Below, piece after piece: positions 31,431-40,263 of a stretch of 64,000 nt of DNA. Below the pieces are notes generated by a model, which was not told the origin of the DNA, ran no database searches, and worked only from the letters and a program-made list of their open reading frames with translations. Position 1 is the stretch's first letter, and the number at the start of each line of letters is the position of its first letter. The stretch is from Vitrella brassicaformis CCMP3155 (Eukaryota; Protista; Chromerida), in contig CDMY01000424.1 of the NCBI GenBank assembly GCA_001179505.1, positions 1 to 64,000 of the forward strand, given 5' to 3'. The translations under genes and the position numbers were made by a program.

Positions 31431-31543
31431 TGCGCCTTTGCGTTCCCGCGCCCTAGCTGCCCCTTCCGTCCAGCCGTCCCTCCTTCCATCAGTCGTTTCC
31501 CCCTCCTCCAGAACGTGTGCCTGGCTCCTGATCTCCCCTGACG

Positions 31544-32008
31544 ATGCCGAAGAAATCTAATTTGCAGATCAGCAGCTGGAACTTCAACCCGCACCGAGTG
31601 TTGGCGAATGCGGACATGCGGCCGGGGACCCACCTCATTTGGCAGCGGTCAGTGGGGGGGTCCGAGGAACAGCTCAATGAGCACATCAATCAAGCCCTGA
31701 TGCGAAGCCAACCACCACAACAGCCGGTGAGTGTGACGCACACGAATGCGTGATGCATCGACAGAATGAACGAAGAGCAGCACCGGCTGGCATCTGGCTG
31801 TCTGGCTGTCTGTGTGTGTACCGTCGCTCAGACTCGATGGCAGAGGTACTTCGCGAGGAACAAGGCATTGCTGGCGGCCCTGACGGTGATATTTGGGGGT
31901 GCGTCCGTGGTGATCTACCTGGGTAATACCTGGAAGCCGCCCGGCTTCACCGACAAGAGCAGGAAGCTCCGCAAGGAGATTCTCGAGCAGCACTTCCACG
32001 AGGTCTGA
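31544..32008 (+). CDS. Small single-pass membrane protein (~120 aa)
   Basis: Two exons (intron 31727-31831, phase 0) giving MPKKSNLQ...QQP|TRWQRYF...LLAALTVIFGGASVVIYLG...HFHEV*. Confidence 0.7.
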
Positions 32009-32908
32009 CGGCTGCCTGCCTGCCTGCCTGGCGTGTCTGTCCACCCTCCTTGTTTTGCGGAGGGCTGGGCTGCGAGGGAGGGAAGGAGGGCTGGGGTGGG
32101 GTGGGCGGCTGTCCATGGAAGGCGGGGCGTGTGTATTGACTGTTTGCTGACAGACCTTTCATGTCTGGTGGGCTGTCTTGCAGTTTGAGTGTGTACAATC
32201 AGTCAGTGAGTGTGTTCCGTGTACCCTTGCTTTGCTGTTGCCACTTGTGCCTGCTGTGGGAGGGAGACGAGGCACACAGACACACCACAGCACCACGGGT
32301 GCAGTTGCTGCGAAGAGAGAGAAAGGCGAGATGTATCAGTTTTTGTGGGTGTGGTTGTAGTTGATCGACAGTATGTTGCAAGACCCTGCAACGACCACCC
32401 AAGTTTGTCAACTGTGGATTCACTCTGTAACCACAGCCGAATCAACGGTCCCATCCATAGTCACGCCATCACATGTCGGCTGACCCACACATCACTGACT
32501 GTTAATTCGCTCCTTTCCGCGTTGTATGTAAAACTCTTTTTGACGCTTGTGACAAGGATACACAGGTACGCCAGGCCACAGTCATCATATATGGGCGAAA
32601 AATACTCTCGACCAGCACCACAGAGGCACACTGAATGACTGTACACACGCAAATCAGTGTCGCATTAGGTCCATCGGGCCCCCCCGAGCCCCCACTGCTG
32701 CACGCCACACCTCTCTGCACACCAACATGCACTGCACAGACCCCGGTGAAGGCGTACTCACGATACAGCTGCATTGGCCAGAGGGAGAAAACCGCACCGA
32801 AAAGAGCGGGCCTACCACTGGTGGTGATACAGATGCCGACTCGGATCGAGCAGGAGGCACAATCACGCCACGAAGGATTGCGATAAGGCCGGCCGTCTGT
32901 CTGTCTTG

Positions 32909-35129
32909 TCATCGTCTGGCCGGCAGCACAGGCGGTGGGTTGTCGTGCTCCAGACGCTCGATGCCAAGCAGCTTGAGTGCCCACTTTTCATAGTAGGGGT
33001 CCGTGTCGCCCGTGTAGACCTTAAACAGGAAGTACTGCACGGCACGGCGGTGGGACACGCAAAGGAAAAAGATGAGGGCACGGCACCGACATAGATAGAC
33101 ACTACATTGTGTCTGTGTGCCTGTGTGTACCTTCTCGAAGGCGATCTTGGCGAGTTGCGCCCACTTGCCCCGGCTGTGCCACGCCACGTTCCTTGGTGGA
33201 AGCTGGGGAAGAGCCAGGAAGACAGCCCCTTCGTCGCCGAAGTCAGTGATACACAACGCATTGAGCGACGGGATCTCCTTGGCCTCCTCGCCGCACATCA
33301 GAGAACCTATGTTGTGTGCCGTTGCCGTACCCATCGTCTCTATCATGTAACTGACAGGCAGAGGAAGCAACACATGGAATGAATGAATGAATGAACGCGC
33401 TTTGGGTCTTTCCTTTCTCACCCACCCGGTCTTGGGTGCTCCCGTGGCGACCGGCGTGGTCTCGACGGGCGGGATGGCGGTAGCCACACCAACGACGAAG
33501 ACATTCTTGAATGCGGGGTTCTGCTGCATGGCGTTGCACAGCACGCACCCCTTGGCGTTGGTCAGCCCCAACTCGGCAAGCTTGGGGTTTTTGAGGAACC
33601 CCACGCCCTCAAAGGGAGGAATGAAAACGCCATAATCGAAGGGGAGATCGTGCTTCATGGGCGGGTCGGAGGACGCCTGGCGCTCGGGCAGCTGCGTGAG
33701 ATGGACTGTGTCGGGTGAAACCTCATCGATGTGGGCGTTGGTAATCCACTTGATGTCGCGCTCCCGGAACAGACTCTCAATCAGACCTGATGGATGACAC
33801 AAACAACGAAACAACGATCTCTGTGCCCTCAGCTGGTCCCGGGCGTCTTACATGCGTACGTACCTTTGCTGTCGCCAACACCTCCCAATCCCAGGTGGCC
33901 CACATATGGTTCAGAGCTCACTGACACGCACGGAAGCGCACCAACGCGAGCATCGGATGGAAGGGATGTGCACATCATGGTGGTGCCTACCGTAAGTAAT
34001 AGGGACGTATTTTCTCAGCTTCTTTTTTCGCAGCTCGTTGTCCATTATCATTGCGTGCTCGTATGCCGGCCCAAAGCACGACGCCCCCGGCGCTGCGCCA
34101 ACCACTATAGCGCCCTTCTTCTCCCGGGCCACTTTGTCACAAAAGGCATCCCACTTCTCAGCGGCCTTTTCAGCGTGCTCGCCGTTGCAGATCGACTCCG
34201 TGTAGAAGGCCGGTCCGAGACCTTTCACCTGGTCAAAGGCCAAGCGAGGGCCTGTTGCAACCACCTGACACCAAGGCAGCGAATGCGAAAGCGTTTGAAG
34301 GCTGCCTGCACTGCCTTTGAGAGCGTGTGTGTGGCAGAGCCACGGCCGTAGCGATGCACCAGGTAGTCGTAGTCAATCTGCTGCAGGTCCTCGGGTGCCC
34401 CCTCGCCCATGTCCCTGACGTAGAGGCGGTTGTCGGACGGCTCGAGCCGCTCAACGCTCGCGTGGCGGAAGTTGATGCCCTTCCTGTTCAACACACTGCC
34501 CAAGTCGAGCCTGATCTCATCTTTGGTCCTCGTACGCACCGCTACCCTGGCACACAGGCATATCGATTGGCGGCAGCGAAACCATGAGTGTGTGGGTCAC
34601 GTCACTTGGTGTGCTTACCATGGGCACGAGGGCGTGAATTCAAAGTACGGGCGGCTTGACAGGAGCGTGAGGGACACAGGGCGGCCATTGAGGGCCGCCT
34701 GGCGTTCCTTGACCACACCCATTATGTCGAATGCAGTGGACACGCCACCAATCCCCCCACCCACGACGACTATTTTGATGGGCTCCATGCCGCCAGCAAC
34801 GTCGACAGGAGCATCAGGCGTCGCCACTGACGTCGACGCGCTGCTCGACAGGCGATGACGGACAGAGGGCCTCGGCACAATAGACGACTGCACACACACA
34901 ACAGGGAGAGCGTGAAGGTTGCAAATGCAAGCATGCACGCACGCGTGACCCTCGCAGCACCCACCAGCAGCAAACCCAGCCTCACCTTAGCTGCGGGTGG
35001 TTCGCCCTGCGCACCACCGTCTCTGCCACGGAATCTCCAGGGCTGGTGATGCGATGAGAAGGATGGATGAGCAGTGAAAGCTGCCGTCGAGTGCCACAGT
35101 GTCATCACTGCCAAGCAGAATAGCACCAT
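32909..35129 (-). CDS. sqr: Type I sulfide:quinone oxidoreductase with N-terminal signal peptide plus transit-like peptide
   Basis: IVVVGGGIGG, FTPSCPW, ESICNGEHA, GASCFGPAYE, SSEPYVGHLGLGGVGDSK, APKTG|YMIE, LNALCITDFGD, PQLPPRNV, GKWAQLAKIAFEK|YF; all three type I cysteines are present. In-frame upstream ATGs also exist at 35177 and 35330. Confidence 0.92.
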
Positions 35130-35382
35130 GCCGCCAGCAGAGTGGCGGGGCCGGTCAGTCTTGCGCTTTCTCGCCATCAGCAGGCTCTCTGGGAAGCCGA
35201 ATGGAGTAAGCTGCTGGTCCAGAGAAGCCTGTTGGACTTGTTGGACCCGGGAAGAGATCTGCTGCTCTAAGCTCGCAAACGTTGGGACAACGCCCAGAGA
35301 ATCGTTTCCGGGCTGGGCGTCGCTTTTCATCACTTCCGACAGCCCAAGTGAAGAACATCATCGCCTGATTCATCAAAACAAG

Positions 35383-38300
35383 ATGGCGAGAGGAAGCCCT
35401 CATGTCACTCCCAGATCTGGGACGAAGATAGTAGGCATGCATTGCTGTTCGTGTGTTGTTGACAAGCCAGAGCTGGCCAATGGGGCCGACAATTCATCGG
35501 GTCGTGCCACACGTGTGTCGGTGTGTGGTGCAGGTTATTATTGGAGGCGTGGCTGGAGGGGCCACTGCGGCTGCTCGACTCCGACGCCTCGATGAGAACT
35601 GTCAAATCGTTATGTTTGAGCGCGGTGAGGAAAAAAAAGAGGCGGGCCGCATGCAGACGAGGGCCACTGACCGATCGGTGTTCGCGTTGCTTTTAGGGCC
35701 GTACGTGAGCTTCGCCAACTGTGGACTCCCGTAGGCACCAAGGGGCGGACACACGCACATACACAGAGGGTGTGGTGTGCTGTTTGTCTTACCACAGTTA
35801 CTACGTGGGTGGCATCATCGAGAAGGCCGATGACCTGCTGGTGACCACACCCATGCGGCTGGTCCATCGATACAACGTAGGCATGACACCAGAGAGAGAG
35901 AGAGAGAGAGAACGTGGGTCGTGTTGACATTCAAACCGGTTTGTCTGTCTGTGTGTGTGTGTGTGGTCAGGTCGATGTCCGCATCCAGACGGAGGTGATT
36001 GGCATCGACGCCACAAACAAGACCGTCAAGGCTAAACACATCTCTTCAGGTACAGTAGGAGGAGCACCATCGGGACCAATCTCTCTCCATATCCATCCAT
36101 CGTGCACTCACGTGTGTGTGGTCACCGTCAACCAGGCGAGATGTACGAGGAGACGTACGACTATGTGCTCCTGTCCCCCGGTGCCGAGCCGATCCGTCCG
36201 CCGCTTCCCGGCATCGACCTGGGTGGCGTCTTCTCTGTGCGGTCGATCCCCGACGTGCAGCGCATCGTCAGCTGGTGCAAGGACCCGTCGCGCGCTGAGC
36301 GCCTCAAGAAGGGCACTGCCGTCGTGGTTGGCGGCGGCTTCATCGGACTCGAGGTACACACACCGTGACCACCCTGCCGTGTGCATCAGTTTGTATACGG
36401 ATGGGTTTGTTTCTGTGAGTGTGCAGATGGCGGAGAATTTGGACCATCTGGGCATGAAAGTCGTGGTGGTAGAAATGCTCCCACAGGTGGGCGGGTGGGC
36501 GGACACAGGAGAGGGCACGTGTGGCTGTCTTCCTGTGATGTGTTTCCCACCGTCTGTGTGGATCAGTTGATGCCCCCACTCGATTATGAGGTGCATGATA
36601 CACACACCGACGGCACAGCCACTGTGGATCGGCGAAAGGAGGCATTTGTGCGTCGTGTGCTTGTGTTGTGTGTGCAGATGGCAGTGACGGTTCAGGAGCA
36701 TGTCATTCGTCGCGGCGTGGAGTTGTGTCTCGGAGATGGTGTGGCTGGTTTTGAGCAGATCGACAACACTGACAGGTCAGACCATCTGCAGCCCACCTAA
36801 AGTGGCGCACTTGCGGATTCAGTGTGGCTATGTGTCCTTGGCAGGCTGACCGTCAAGACCAGCAGTGGGCGCGCAATTCCCTGTGATTTGGCCATCCTGT
36901 CTATCGGCGTCAAGCCTGAGAGCAAACTCGCGCAGATGGCCGGACTCAAACTGGTACGAACACGACACACCTTCGTGCAGCCAGCCTGTCTCTCCGTCTG
37001 TGCGTGTGTGGCTCCACCAGGGTTTCCGGGGCTCCATCATCACTGACGAGCGGATGCGCACGTCAGACCCTTCAATCTATGCGGTTGGCGATGCCGTGCA
37101 GATCAAGGATTTCGTCCTGAAGGTCGACACCCTGGTGCCGCTGGCTGGTCCCGCCAATCGGCAAGCCCGCGTGGCGGCCGACAACATGATGGGCCGAACG
37201 GAGAGCACCTACCGTGGGTGCCAGGGCACGGCCGTGTGTGGTGTGTTTGGGTGGACGCTGGCCATGACGGGCGCCACGCAAAAGACACTCGACAGGCACA
37301 ACTACGGGTCAGTGAGGGTAGCACAATGGATGGATGGATGCGGCACAGCAACACGGACAGATGGATGGACGCAAGTGCGTGTGGATGGATGGTGCGGGCA
37401 GGTCCTACGGCTGTGTTTATGCCCACCCACTCAATCACGTCGGGTAGGAACAGACACACGATCCATTCATTCACTGACTGCTGGTGAGGGGGGCGCTGCT
37501 TGATGACTTACTGACACGTCAGCTACTACCCGGGTGCCAAGAGCGTCCACATCAAACTGGTCTTCGACACCAAGACACGCAAAGTGCTCGGCGCACAGGT
37601 GAGGGAGGGGGGGAGGGAGGGAGGGAGGGAGGGAGCGAGGCATGCAGATGGGTAGAGAGGTGCGGGATCTGCATATGGCCGGACGTCTGTGGGATTGCTG
37701 GTTGGCTGCTGCAGGCGTGTGGTGTGAGTGGAGTGGAGAAGCGCATCGACGTGCTGTCGACGTACATCCAGATGGGCGCCACAGTGGACGACCTGGCTGA
37801 GGCCGAACTGTGCTATGCCCCACAATATGGCGCTGCCCGCGACCCCATCAACCACATAGGGATGATTGCACAGAACTTCCTCGAGGGCGACTACGCGCCT
37901 CAGTCAACGCCAGGTGGGGTGGGGCGCCTGATGTGAGTGACCCCAAACCACTCCCTCACACACCATCAGCCATCTGGGCTCTGACGATGTTGTGTCTTCA
38001 GAGACGCTCAAGGAGGGTATCATCCTCGACGTTAGAAGGTGTGAAGACATCCACAAGGCAGCAAGCAAGAAAGAATGAATCATTGTCGGTGTGCGCGTGC
38101 GTGTATCGGTTGGTTGGCGGTATGTCCGTGTATGCAGCGACAAGGAGATCGACAAGACGCACGAGAAGATTGAGCACTCCATAAGGGTGCCACTCGACTT
38201 CCTCAGAGCCAAAATCGATGAGCTGCCCAAGGGCACACCCATACACGTACACAACACACCCACACACACACACACACAGGGGGCGAGACAGCCCTCGCTC

Positions 38301-40263
38301 AACTCATTCGTTCCTCTCTGTCGGCTGTGTTTGTCGTCCATCCATGCACGATTCAGACTGTGTGTCGGGCGGGCCAGCGTGCCTACGTGGCTTGCAGGAT
38401 CCTCCGACAGCTGGGATACAACGCATCGTAAGCNNNNNNNNNNNNNNNNNNNNNNNNNNNNNNNNNNNNNNNNNNNNNNNNNNNNNNNNNNNNNNNNNNN
38501 NNNNNNNNNNNNNNNNNNNNNNNNNNNNNNNNNNNNNNNNNNNNNNNNNNNNNNNNNNNNNNNNNNNNNNNNNNNNNNNNNNNNNNNNNNNNNNNNNNNN
38601 NNNNNNNNNNNNNNNNNNNNNNNNNNNNNNNNNNNNNNNNNNNNNNNNNNNNNNNNNNNNNNNNNNNNNNNNNNNNNNNNNNNNNNNNNNNNNNNNNNNN
38701 NNNNNNNNNNNNNNNNNNNNNNNNNNNNNNNNNGGATGGATGGTGCGGGCAGGTCCTACGGCTGTGTTTATGCCCACCCACTCAATCACGTCGGGTAGGA
38801 ACAGACACACGATCCATTCATTCACTGACTGCTGGTGAGGGGGGCGCTGCTTGATGACTTACTGACACGTCAGCTACTACCCGGGTGCCAAGAGCGTCCA
38901 CATCAAACTGGTCTTCGACACCAAGACACGCAAAGTGCTCGGCGCACAGGTGAGGGAGGGGGGGAGGGAGGGAGGGAGGGAGGGAGCGAGGCATGCAGAT
39001 GGGTAGAGAGGTGCGGGATCTGCATATGGCCGGACGTCTGTGGGATTGCTGGTTGGCTGCTGCAGGCGTGTGGTGTGAGTGGAGTGGAGAAGCGCATCGA
39101 CGTGCTGTCGACGTACATCCAGATGGGCGCCACAGTGGACGACCTGGCTGAGGCCGAACTGTGCTATGCCCCACAATATGGCGCTGCCCGCGACCCCATC
39201 AACCACATAGGGATGATTGCACAGAACTTCCTCGAGGGCGACTACGCGCCTCAGTCAACGCCAGGTGGGGTGGGGCGCCTGATGTGAGTGACCCCAAACC
39301 ACTCCCTCACACACCATCAGCCATCTGGGCTCTGACGATGTTGTGTCTTCAGAGACGCTCAAGGAGGGTATCATCCTCGACGTTAGAAGGTGTGAAGACA
39401 TCCACAAGGCAGCAAGCAAGAAAGAATGAATCATTGTCGGTGTGCGCGTGCGTGTATCGGTTGGTTGGCGGTATGTCCGTGTATGCAGCGACAAGGAGAT
39501 CGACAAGACGCACGAGAAGATTGAGCACTCCATAAGGGTGCCACTCGACTTCCTCAGAGCCAAAATCGATGAGCTGCCCAAGGGCACACCCATACACGTA
39601 CACAACACACCCACACACACACACACACAGGGGGCGAGACAGCCCTCGCTCAACTCATTCGTTCCTCTCTGTCGGCTGTGTTTGTCGTCCATCCATGCAC
39701 GATTCAGACTGTGTGTCGGGCGGGCCAGCGTGCCTACGTGGCTTGCAGGATCCTCCGACAGCTGGGATACAACGCATCGTAAGCAGACAGACAGACCCAC
39801 CGCACTGACTCACCCTAAGTAGTTTCGATCCGTGCAACCTTCCTTCCCTCTCTGGTTGATGTTGGAATGGATGGATGCCTGCAGGTACGTGAATGGCGGG
39901 TGGCACACGTGGAAGGTAAGTAAGACGCCCAGGCTGGCAGGCAGGCAGGCAGGGACGACAGGAGATGCTAATGCGTTCTCACCCACCGACTTGCTGTGTC
40001 CATGTGTCTTTGCATAGGTACTCAACCTCCCGCTCGACAAGCTGTGCGAACGCCCAGAGGCACCTGACGATGACGAGTCCTTCCCAAAAAGCTGGGGTGC
40101 CGACATTGAGCTGAGTGGTAAGACAAACAGCACACCACACCCTCTGTGTATGTGCGTGTGTCCGCCCCTTGGTGCTGCCTACGTGTACGTCTGTCTGTTT
40201 GTGTGCGTCTTGTTGATTGCAGGCAAGGATTGCCATGACATGGTCTACCGACGCATTTGGTGA
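35383..40263 (+). CDS. CoA-disulfide reductase-rhodanese fusion (Npsr/CoADR-RHD type persulfide reductase); 3' part duplicated around an assembly gap
   Basis: KI|VIIGGVAGGATAAARLRR, SFANCGLP|YY, VVGGGFIGLE, YAVGDA, LAGPANRQAR, YYPGA, LCYAPQYG; rhodanese ILDVR...CRAGQRAYVACRIL...NGGWHTW. The last exon is uncertain. Confidence 0.92.
37383..39784. repeat. Apparently exact 1.05-kb duplication (37383-38433 = 38734-39784) flanking a 300-N gap
   Basis: Identical ORF translations at a constant 1351-bp offset; most likely a contig-overlap artefact. Confidence 0.85.

Follow-up and report, generated by a model that had tools for sequence, protein, structure and literature searches.

The chromerid alga Vitrella brassicaformis CCMP3155 has an expressed, spliced nuclear gene for a probable type I sulfide:quinone oxidoreductase (SQR), a form of the enzyme known from bacteria, and the leader of the encoded protein carries a predicted plastid-targeting signal. 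The gene lies on the minus strand of a stretch of 64,000 nucleotides (hereafter the window), which matches contig CDMY01000424.1 of assembly GCA_001179505.1 with identical coordinates. Its coding sequence (CDS) of 1638 nt, split into eight exons between positions 32909 and 35129, encodes a protein of 545 amino acids. Two parts can be distinguished in this protein: a mature domain spanning approximately residues 85-530, with the type I SQR fold and all catalytic residues, and an unstructured leader of some 85 residues, composed of a predicted hydrophobic signal peptide, the predicted cleavage site HSTAA|F and a Ser/Pro/Arg/His-rich stretch. The reading we favor, at a probability of roughly 0.6, is that of a functional type I SQR imported into the four-membrane plastid of this alga.

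Assignment of the mature domain to type I, as in the original prediction, is well supported by comparison with types II, III and V. When the mature sequence was compared with solved structures, the type I enzymes of Acidithiobacillus ferrooxidans (E 1.9e-105) and Aquifex aeolicus (E 3.4e-96) preceded the type V enzyme of Acidianus ambivalens (E 3.2e-21) and the human mitochondrial SQOR of type II (E 3e-5); with single exons as queries, the two type I enzymes were the sole matches up to E 1. The NCBIfam model of type III SQR gave 61 bits for a cut-off of 525. The type I call, made against types II, III and V, rests on the solved structures and on Rhodobacter-type relatives. Profile searches were otherwise little informative: exon pieces produced almost no matches in Pfam and NCBIfam, the full protein alone clearing the Pfam cut-off (PF07992, Pyr_redox_2; 35.9 bits for a cut-off of 26.1), and when exon 6 was used to query a 50%-representative protein library, the protein encoded in the window itself was not among the matches.

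An AlphaFold model built with 42 sequences points in the same direction. Its predicted local distance difference test (pLDDT) values exceed 90 over residues 85-530, and its template modelling (TM) scores are 0.94 to the Aquifex structure (3hyv) and 0.93 to that of A. ferrooxidans (3sz0), versus 0.78-0.83 for other types (about 0.82 for human SQOR and 0.78 for Acidianus). In structural alignments, full-length identity to the solved type I enzymes is 38-40%. The three type I cysteines announced by the original prediction (SIC, GASCFGPAYE and LCITDFG) are found at positions 226, 263 and 464, in the contexts ..ESIC226NGEH, GASC263FGPAYE and LC464ITDFG, and align to their counterparts in the A. ferrooxidans and Aquifex enzymes (Table 1). 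Active-site residues His132, Glu166 and His198 of A. ferrooxidans correspond to His230, Glu269 and His300, and the quinone-site Phe of the ..AFEKYF motif is Phe502; all four are conserved. The equivalents of Cys128, His132, Cys160, His198 and Cys356, the five positions that were mutated in the series of A. ferrooxidans structures, are kept together with that of Glu166 in Vitrella and in 28-29 of 29 members of the clade described below. At the C-terminus, the model contains two helices (493-512 and 518-526) that match the C-terminal ends of 3hyv and 3sz0 in the alignments; they are presumably the counterparts of the helices by which type I enzymes bind membranes. The Vitrella protein also has four short insertions (RQAALNGR, MGE/APEDL, KVARE and LAEL, at residues 110-117, 184-192, 244-248 and 380-383) that are missing from the compared Aquificaceae, alphaproteobacterial and diatom-like sequences, except that LAEL was not reported absent relative to the Aquificaceae sequence.

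The leader reads MVLFCLAVMTLWHSTAA, then FTAHPSF..., with intron 1 between ..PAAK and SSIVPRPS.., exactly as quoted in the original prediction, which had described from ATG 35129 a hydrophobic core, an AxA-type cleavage site and Phe at +1. Mean Kyte-Doolittle hydropathy of the h-region is 2.99 over 9 residues, and positions -3 and -1 of the predicted cleavage site are occupied by Thr and Ala. In the structural model, residues 1-73 have pLDDT values below 50, and a helix at 2-13 is the only predicted element. Residues 18-84 contain 21% Ser plus Thr, versus 9% in the mature part, with 7 Arg/Lys, 4 His and 5 Asp/Glu.

Plastid signals of diatoms are marked by an 'ASAFAP' motif, and ASAFind scores the 20 residues following the cleavage site, originally with a cut-off of 2 (PMC4329603). 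Position-weighted matrices have since been published for each chromerid by Fussy et al. 2019, with a threshold of 1 for V. brassicaformis that corresponds to a sensitivity of 0.90 and a precision of 0.92 (PMC6668581). Using the Vitrella matrix, with scores summed by hand and judged against the published threshold, the 20 residues starting at Phe18 obtain a transit score of 2.30; for the cleavage site itself, the score over 25 residues reaches 5.40 at 17|18 versus 4.68 at 16|17. The bipartite plastid signal that had been proposed is therefore supported in silico, by the h-region, the T-x-A|F site, the transit score, the disorder of the spacer and the architecture of diatom relatives. We regard plastid targeting, which is a prediction, as the best-supported reading of the leader and a fairly probable one.

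These diatom relatives belong to a large set of eukaryotic proteins that are 41-46% identical to the Vitrella SQR, named members of which come from Nitzschia, Cyclotella, Amphora and other Bacillariaceae. Catalytic residues are kept in the clade (P0048, P0189 and P0194 are examples). The N-terminus is complete, and the leader 35 residues or longer, in 54 members; a hydrophobic region begins the protein in 53 of these, and in 49 a small-residue site precedes Phe, Trp, Tyr or Leu, most often Phe. The gene encoding P0048 lies on a diatom-like contig of 23 kb, where its neighbors, NPL4 and a methyltransferase, point to the nuclear genome. About 5 kb away, this contig holds a gene for 1041 amino acids (L084:7521-10646) with PFL-like, glycyl-radical and radical-SAM domains, identified from its domains as a pyruvate formate-lyase fused to its activase, another anaerobiosis-related gene. 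A sequence labelled Alexandrium tamarense in EukProt (P0231) differs at 4 of about 61 leader positions from P0188, an MMETSP protein placed inside the diatom clade, and is probably a diatom contaminant in a dinoflagellate data set.

The closest full-length relatives of the Vitrella protein are bacterial SQRs, with about 44% identity by BLAST and up to 55% over aligned tree columns for proteobacterial sequences; the nearest named ones come from Proteobacteria and Aquificae. None of the nearest relatives was identified as cyanobacterial, and no sequence in the trees carries a cyanobacterial label. In two maximum-likelihood trees that differ in sampling, the Vitrella SQR is sister to a group formed by P0127 and the diatom clade (support 97/91 and 100/91). 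P0127 (L086:579-2096) is an unassigned high-GC sequence from a metagenome contig of 62-68% GC; an upstream in-frame ATG omitted by the gene call adds a hydrophobic N-terminus of 29 residues to it. A search with an alignment that combined a bacterial SQR as scaffold with window exons returned only close relatives of the scaffold. A scan of a genome collection likewise matched only Alphaproteobacteria, two Thiobacillus genomes and one Bdellovibrionota genome. An orthologue in Chromera was not met in the homologue searches.

That the gene contains introns, as originally claimed for 32909-35129, is established by RNA data: all seven introns are of the GT..AG type, 70-98 nt long, and all seven junctions are seen in spliced RNA contigs from public runs (at least three), with zero mismatched letters. 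These contigs also indicate good expression in culture. A database protein found in two transcriptome assemblies (P0410), retrieved with a query of 291 aa obtained by translating across introns 6 and 7 without a stop, is identical to residues 82-545 of our model, and its cluster contains the 545-aa Vitrella protein CEM11750.1 / A0A0G4FEX4. Public names of the latter are limited to "unnamed protein product" and "FAD/NAD(P)-binding domain-containing protein". Bacterial contamination as the source of the gene is ruled out by the introns, the spliced RNA and the eukaryotic genes that flank it (a Ras-like GTPase, a polycystin-domain protein and PARG). At the other end, an SQR transcript contig (L081:1760-3129; about 31540-32909 of the window) extends into a convergent downstream gene of 119 aa, so that the 3' ends of both overlap or abut.

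Of the SQR transcript contigs that inform on the 5' end, four reach 35251-35254, while another stops at 35180 and a further one at 35121. Between 35254 and 35129 there are two ATGs, at 35177 and 35129, both in frame. Position -3 is C at 35177 and G at 35129, the annotated start; position +4 is G at both. The leader described from ATG 35129 stands as to its sequence and its annotated start, except that the assembled mRNA already has an AUG at 35177, its first. Of the two upstream in-frame ATGs mentioned in the original prediction, both are present in the DNA. The one at 35330 was rejected as a start, as it lies outside every transcript contig and only 42 nt from position 35288, where the contig of the divergent neighbor begins. 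The concern that an upstream start would yield a non-signal N-terminus did not materialize, since the form starting at 35177 keeps the predicted signal peptide and 35330 is not transcribed in these contigs.

Table 1. Features of the SQR gene and its head-to-head neighbor, in window coordinates.
Feature	Position	Strand	Remarks
SQR CDS	32909..35129	-	7 introns; stop TGA 32911-32909; protein CEM11750.1 / A0A0G4FEX4, 545 aa
SQR exons 1-4	35129-34986, 34887-34619, 34546-34360, 34264-33991	-	
SQR exons 5-8	33920-33864, 33786-33426, 33350-33131, 33034-32909	-	
SQR transcript contig 5' ends	35251..35254	-	X1, X8, two JGI transcriptome assemblies; approximate start, not mapped transcription start
Upstream in-frame ATG	35175..35177	-	First AUG of assembled transcripts; context ctgctgATGg; adds MARKRKTDRPRHSAGG before Met1
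Predicted endoplasmic reticulum (ER) signal peptide, residues 1-17	35079..35129	-	h-region VLFCLAVMTLW, c-region HSTAA, predicted cut after Ala17
Transit-peptide-like region, part 1, residues 18-48	34986..35078	-	Begins with Phe18; exon 1
Transit-peptide-like region, part 2, residues 49-81	34789..34887	-	SSIVPRPSVRHRLSSSASTS...; exon 2
FAD-binding GGGIGG, residues 91-96	34744..34761	-	Start of mature domain
Cys226 codon	34187..34189	-	A. ferrooxidans Cys128 / Aquifex Cys124
Cys263 codon	34076..34078	-	In GASCFGPAYE; A. ferrooxidans Cys160 / Aquifex Cys156
Cys464 codon	33251..33253	-	A. ferrooxidans Cys356 / Aquifex Cys347
First C-terminal helix, residues 493-504 of 493-512	33131..33166	-	Presumed membrane-binding, amphipathic; model and alignment
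Exon 8 portion of C-terminal helices, residues 505-526	32969..33034	-	Model
Pyridine-nucleotide-disulfide reductase fused to rhodanese (CoADR-RHD architecture)	35480..40263	+	Head-to-head with SQR

Several observations weigh against a plastid SQR shared with diatoms. The leader is only moderately enriched in Ser/Thr, and it contains five acidic residues. ASAFind thresholds presuppose a SignalP-positive protein, and the present leader was judged by hydropathy. Plastid proteins of Vitrella adhere less strictly to Phe at +1 than those of Chromera (PMC6668581), and this residue is less diagnostic in Vitrella than in Chromera or diatoms. Translation from ATG 35177 would give a 561-aa form in which a strongly basic extension of 16 residues precedes the predicted signal peptide, which is kept but recessed, and the transcript contig ending at 35121 stops within the signal-peptide codons. 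No targeting leader is evident in the head-to-head neighbor when read from ATG 35480, so that the products of the two genes may occupy different compartments. Finally, in an approximately unbiased (AU) test, a tree with Vitrella on the proteobacterial side was not rejected (delta lnL 5.3, p 0.43). A single origin of the chromerid and diatom enzymes is therefore favored by the tree grouping but not demonstrated, and no donor lineage can be named from the two trees and this test.

A rival reading is a mitochondrial location, or a dual one in mitochondrion and plastid, where the enzyme would feed ubiquinone as other eukaryotic SQRs do, the outcome being decided by the choice of AUG (35177, 35129 or Met9) or by an ambiguous leader. 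Dual targeting to apicoplast and mitochondrion from ambiguous leaders occurs in Toxoplasma. In Vitrella, a start at 35177 would yield a basic N-terminus, and an mRNA beginning at 35121 would leave Met9 as the start, hence an Arg/Ser/His-rich N-terminus devoid of a hydrophobic core; a contig end, however, is not equal to a transcription start. The literature does place a chromerid SQR in the mitochondrial chain, as the original prediction mentioned, but this appears to be another gene, which largely resolves the question. The entry for Vitrella in Supplementary Table S1, a table drawing partly on Flegontov et al. 2015, is Vbra_5597.t1, a eukaryotic-type SQOR (K22470) with no signal-peptide flag and an ASAFind "No" (PMC6668581). 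Because our protein would be expected under K17218, it is very probably a second, unlisted Vitrella SQR, set apart from Vbra_5597.t1 by the listed description only. The Chromera entry is of the bacterial type, which favors a mitochondrial placement: "K17218 sulfide:ubiquinone oxidoreductase: Cvel_17813.t1-$", where "$" denotes a gene fragment (PMC6668581). Since it is flagged as a fragment, function rather than a targeting signal underlies this placement; Cvel_17813.t1 may be the orthologue of the Vitrella gene. With a eukaryotic-type SQOR already listed as the mitochondrial enzyme of Vitrella, a hydrophobic core and A|F site that fit the Vitrella plastid matrix, and canonical plastid signals on the diatom relatives, we judge a mitochondrial or dual location unlikely.

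The same leader could also bring the protein into the secretory pathway and leave it in the ER, the periplastidial compartment, a vacuole or the cell surface, short of stroma and thylakoids. The hydrophobic N-terminus is the only hard feature of the leader, the Phe rule is relaxed among Vitrella plastid proteins, and the periplasmic face is where the type I SQRs of bacteria work. This outcome is nonetheless quite improbable in view of the Phe actually present at +1, a transit score above threshold, a disordered spacer of about 65 residues ahead of the domain, some 50 diatom relatives with the same layout, which in diatoms is read as plastid, and the requirement of a quinone-dependent enzyme for a quinone-containing membrane. 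As for the protein not being an SQR in vivo, and representing instead a diverged flavoprotein disulfide reductase that acts on a different substrate, or a gene transferred from bacteria that survives as an inactive relic, the generic public annotation and the four lineage-specific insertions would agree with it; conservation of the A. ferrooxidans-series residues and of Glu166 in Vitrella and almost the whole clade, the identity to solved type I enzymes over the full length and good expression in culture make it very hard to credit.

Under the plastid reading, translation would start at AUG 35129 and/or 35177, and the hydrophobic segment would lead the preprotein into the ER, with cleavage predicted after HSTAA. 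The exposed Phe18 and the unstructured stretch that follows would then mediate passage through the inner plastid membranes into the stroma. By analogy with established type I SQRs, the enzyme would sit monotopically on a plastid membrane through its C-terminal amphipathic helices, oxidize H2S to sulfane sulfur at the Cys263/Cys464 pair, and pass electrons via flavin adenine dinucleotide (FAD) to the plastoquinone pool. Its most likely role is the removal of sulfide, either exogenous, in sulfidic micro-habitats, or endogenous, from plastid sulfate assimilation. Enzymes of Cys synthesis are predicted in chromerid plastids (PMC6668581), so sulfide is handled there. A contribution to electron flow, driven by photosystem I (PSI) or chlororespiratory, is possible as a by-product, and we consider detoxification more likely than true sulfide-driven photosynthesis. 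A bolder and unlikely version is that, in chromerids and in many, mostly benthic, diatoms, plastid type I SQR feeds electrons from sulfide to plastoquinone and sustains a flow through PSI independent of photosystem II (PSII). If true, eukaryotic algae of sulfidic mats, sediments and microbialites would have sulfide-supported PSI electron flow; to our knowledge, PSII-independent flow of this kind has so far been ascribed only to cyanobacteria among oxygenic phototrophs.

The neighbor located head-to-head with the SQR gene encodes 770 amino acids with Pyr_redox_2, Pyr_redox, Pyr_redox_dim and Rhodanese domains. Its public annotation opens at 35612 and leaves out the FAD-binding GGVAGG motif at 35543-35560, which is included when reading begins at the first in-frame ATG (35480). 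Its transcript contig starts about 33 nt from the 5' ends of the main SQR contigs; both genes therefore have in common a very short divergent promoter region, which suggests that 35251-35288 is a very compact bidirectional promoter. In the 5' region of the neighbor, the ATGs at 35383, 35402 and 35437 are out of frame, and a GT donor occurs at 35431. Further inside this gene (38427-39885, plus strand), RNA contigs of two runs skip 1457 nt; contigs of another run lie within the interval, and one junction links 37306 with 38873. Alternative splicing could account for this pattern, as could a segment repeated within the rhodanese portion.

Eukaryotic SQRs are generally treated as mitochondrial and of type II, a view followed in published chromerid metabolic maps. 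No paper describing a plastid or diatom SQR was found by full-text literature searches, whose coverage excludes subscription journals, and neither the paper on the chromerid genomes nor that on the ochrophyte plastid proteome mentions sulfide. A clade of type I SQRs with plastid signals, encoded in chromerid and diatom nuclei, thus appears to be undescribed. If such enzymes do operate in the plastids of a chromerid and a broad set of diatoms, sulfide oxidation would be put beside the eukaryotic photosynthetic chain, with a bearing on whether sulfide can reduce plastoquinone in eukaryotes. Sulfide is a PSII poison and Vitrella a coral-reef alga; the enzyme would be a candidate for the sulfide tolerance of benthic and mat-dwelling algae, and a candidate route by which plastids dispose of surplus sulfide from sulfate assimilation. 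The public names call for correction, the diatom proteins being named as generically as the Vitrella one. Diatom transformation is routine. Transfection of Chromera velia is now possible (PMC12407925). The plastid SQR reading is therefore directly testable.

Among known systems, the Vitrella SQR resembles the diatom clade in several respects: both are nuclear-encoded and type I-like, with a predicted signal peptide, Phe/Trp/Tyr/Leu at +1, a transit-like spacer and the catalytic residues. They differ in that identity reaches only 41-46%, and in the CoADR-rhodanese neighbor of Vitrella, which was not seen on the diatom contig examined. This pairing resembles bacterial gene sets for sulfide and persulfide detoxification. 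With the mitochondrial type II SQOR (human, 6OI5), the protein shares the flavoprotein superfamily and, as a prediction, the overall reaction; identity is about 17%, the cysteine set is different, and the leader has a predicted hydrophobic signal peptide instead of a mitochondrial presequence. Cyanobacterial type I SQR (Geitlerinema/Oscillatoria, Aphanothece) feeds plastoquinone for sulfide-driven anoxygenic photosynthesis (PMC8651085). The Vitrella enzyme is assigned to the same type and, if the plastid prediction is right, would likewise have a plastoquinone pool beside PSI as its acceptor, although its nearest named relatives are proteobacterial and aquificalean. Relative to the bacterial type I SQRs at large (A. 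ferrooxidans 3T2Z/3SZ0, Aquifex 3HYV, Rhodobacter-type), it has the same fold, FAD motif, three cysteines, His/Glu/His residues and C-terminal helices, and is distinguished by a nuclear gene with seven spliceosomal introns, a leader of about 85 residues and four short insertions.

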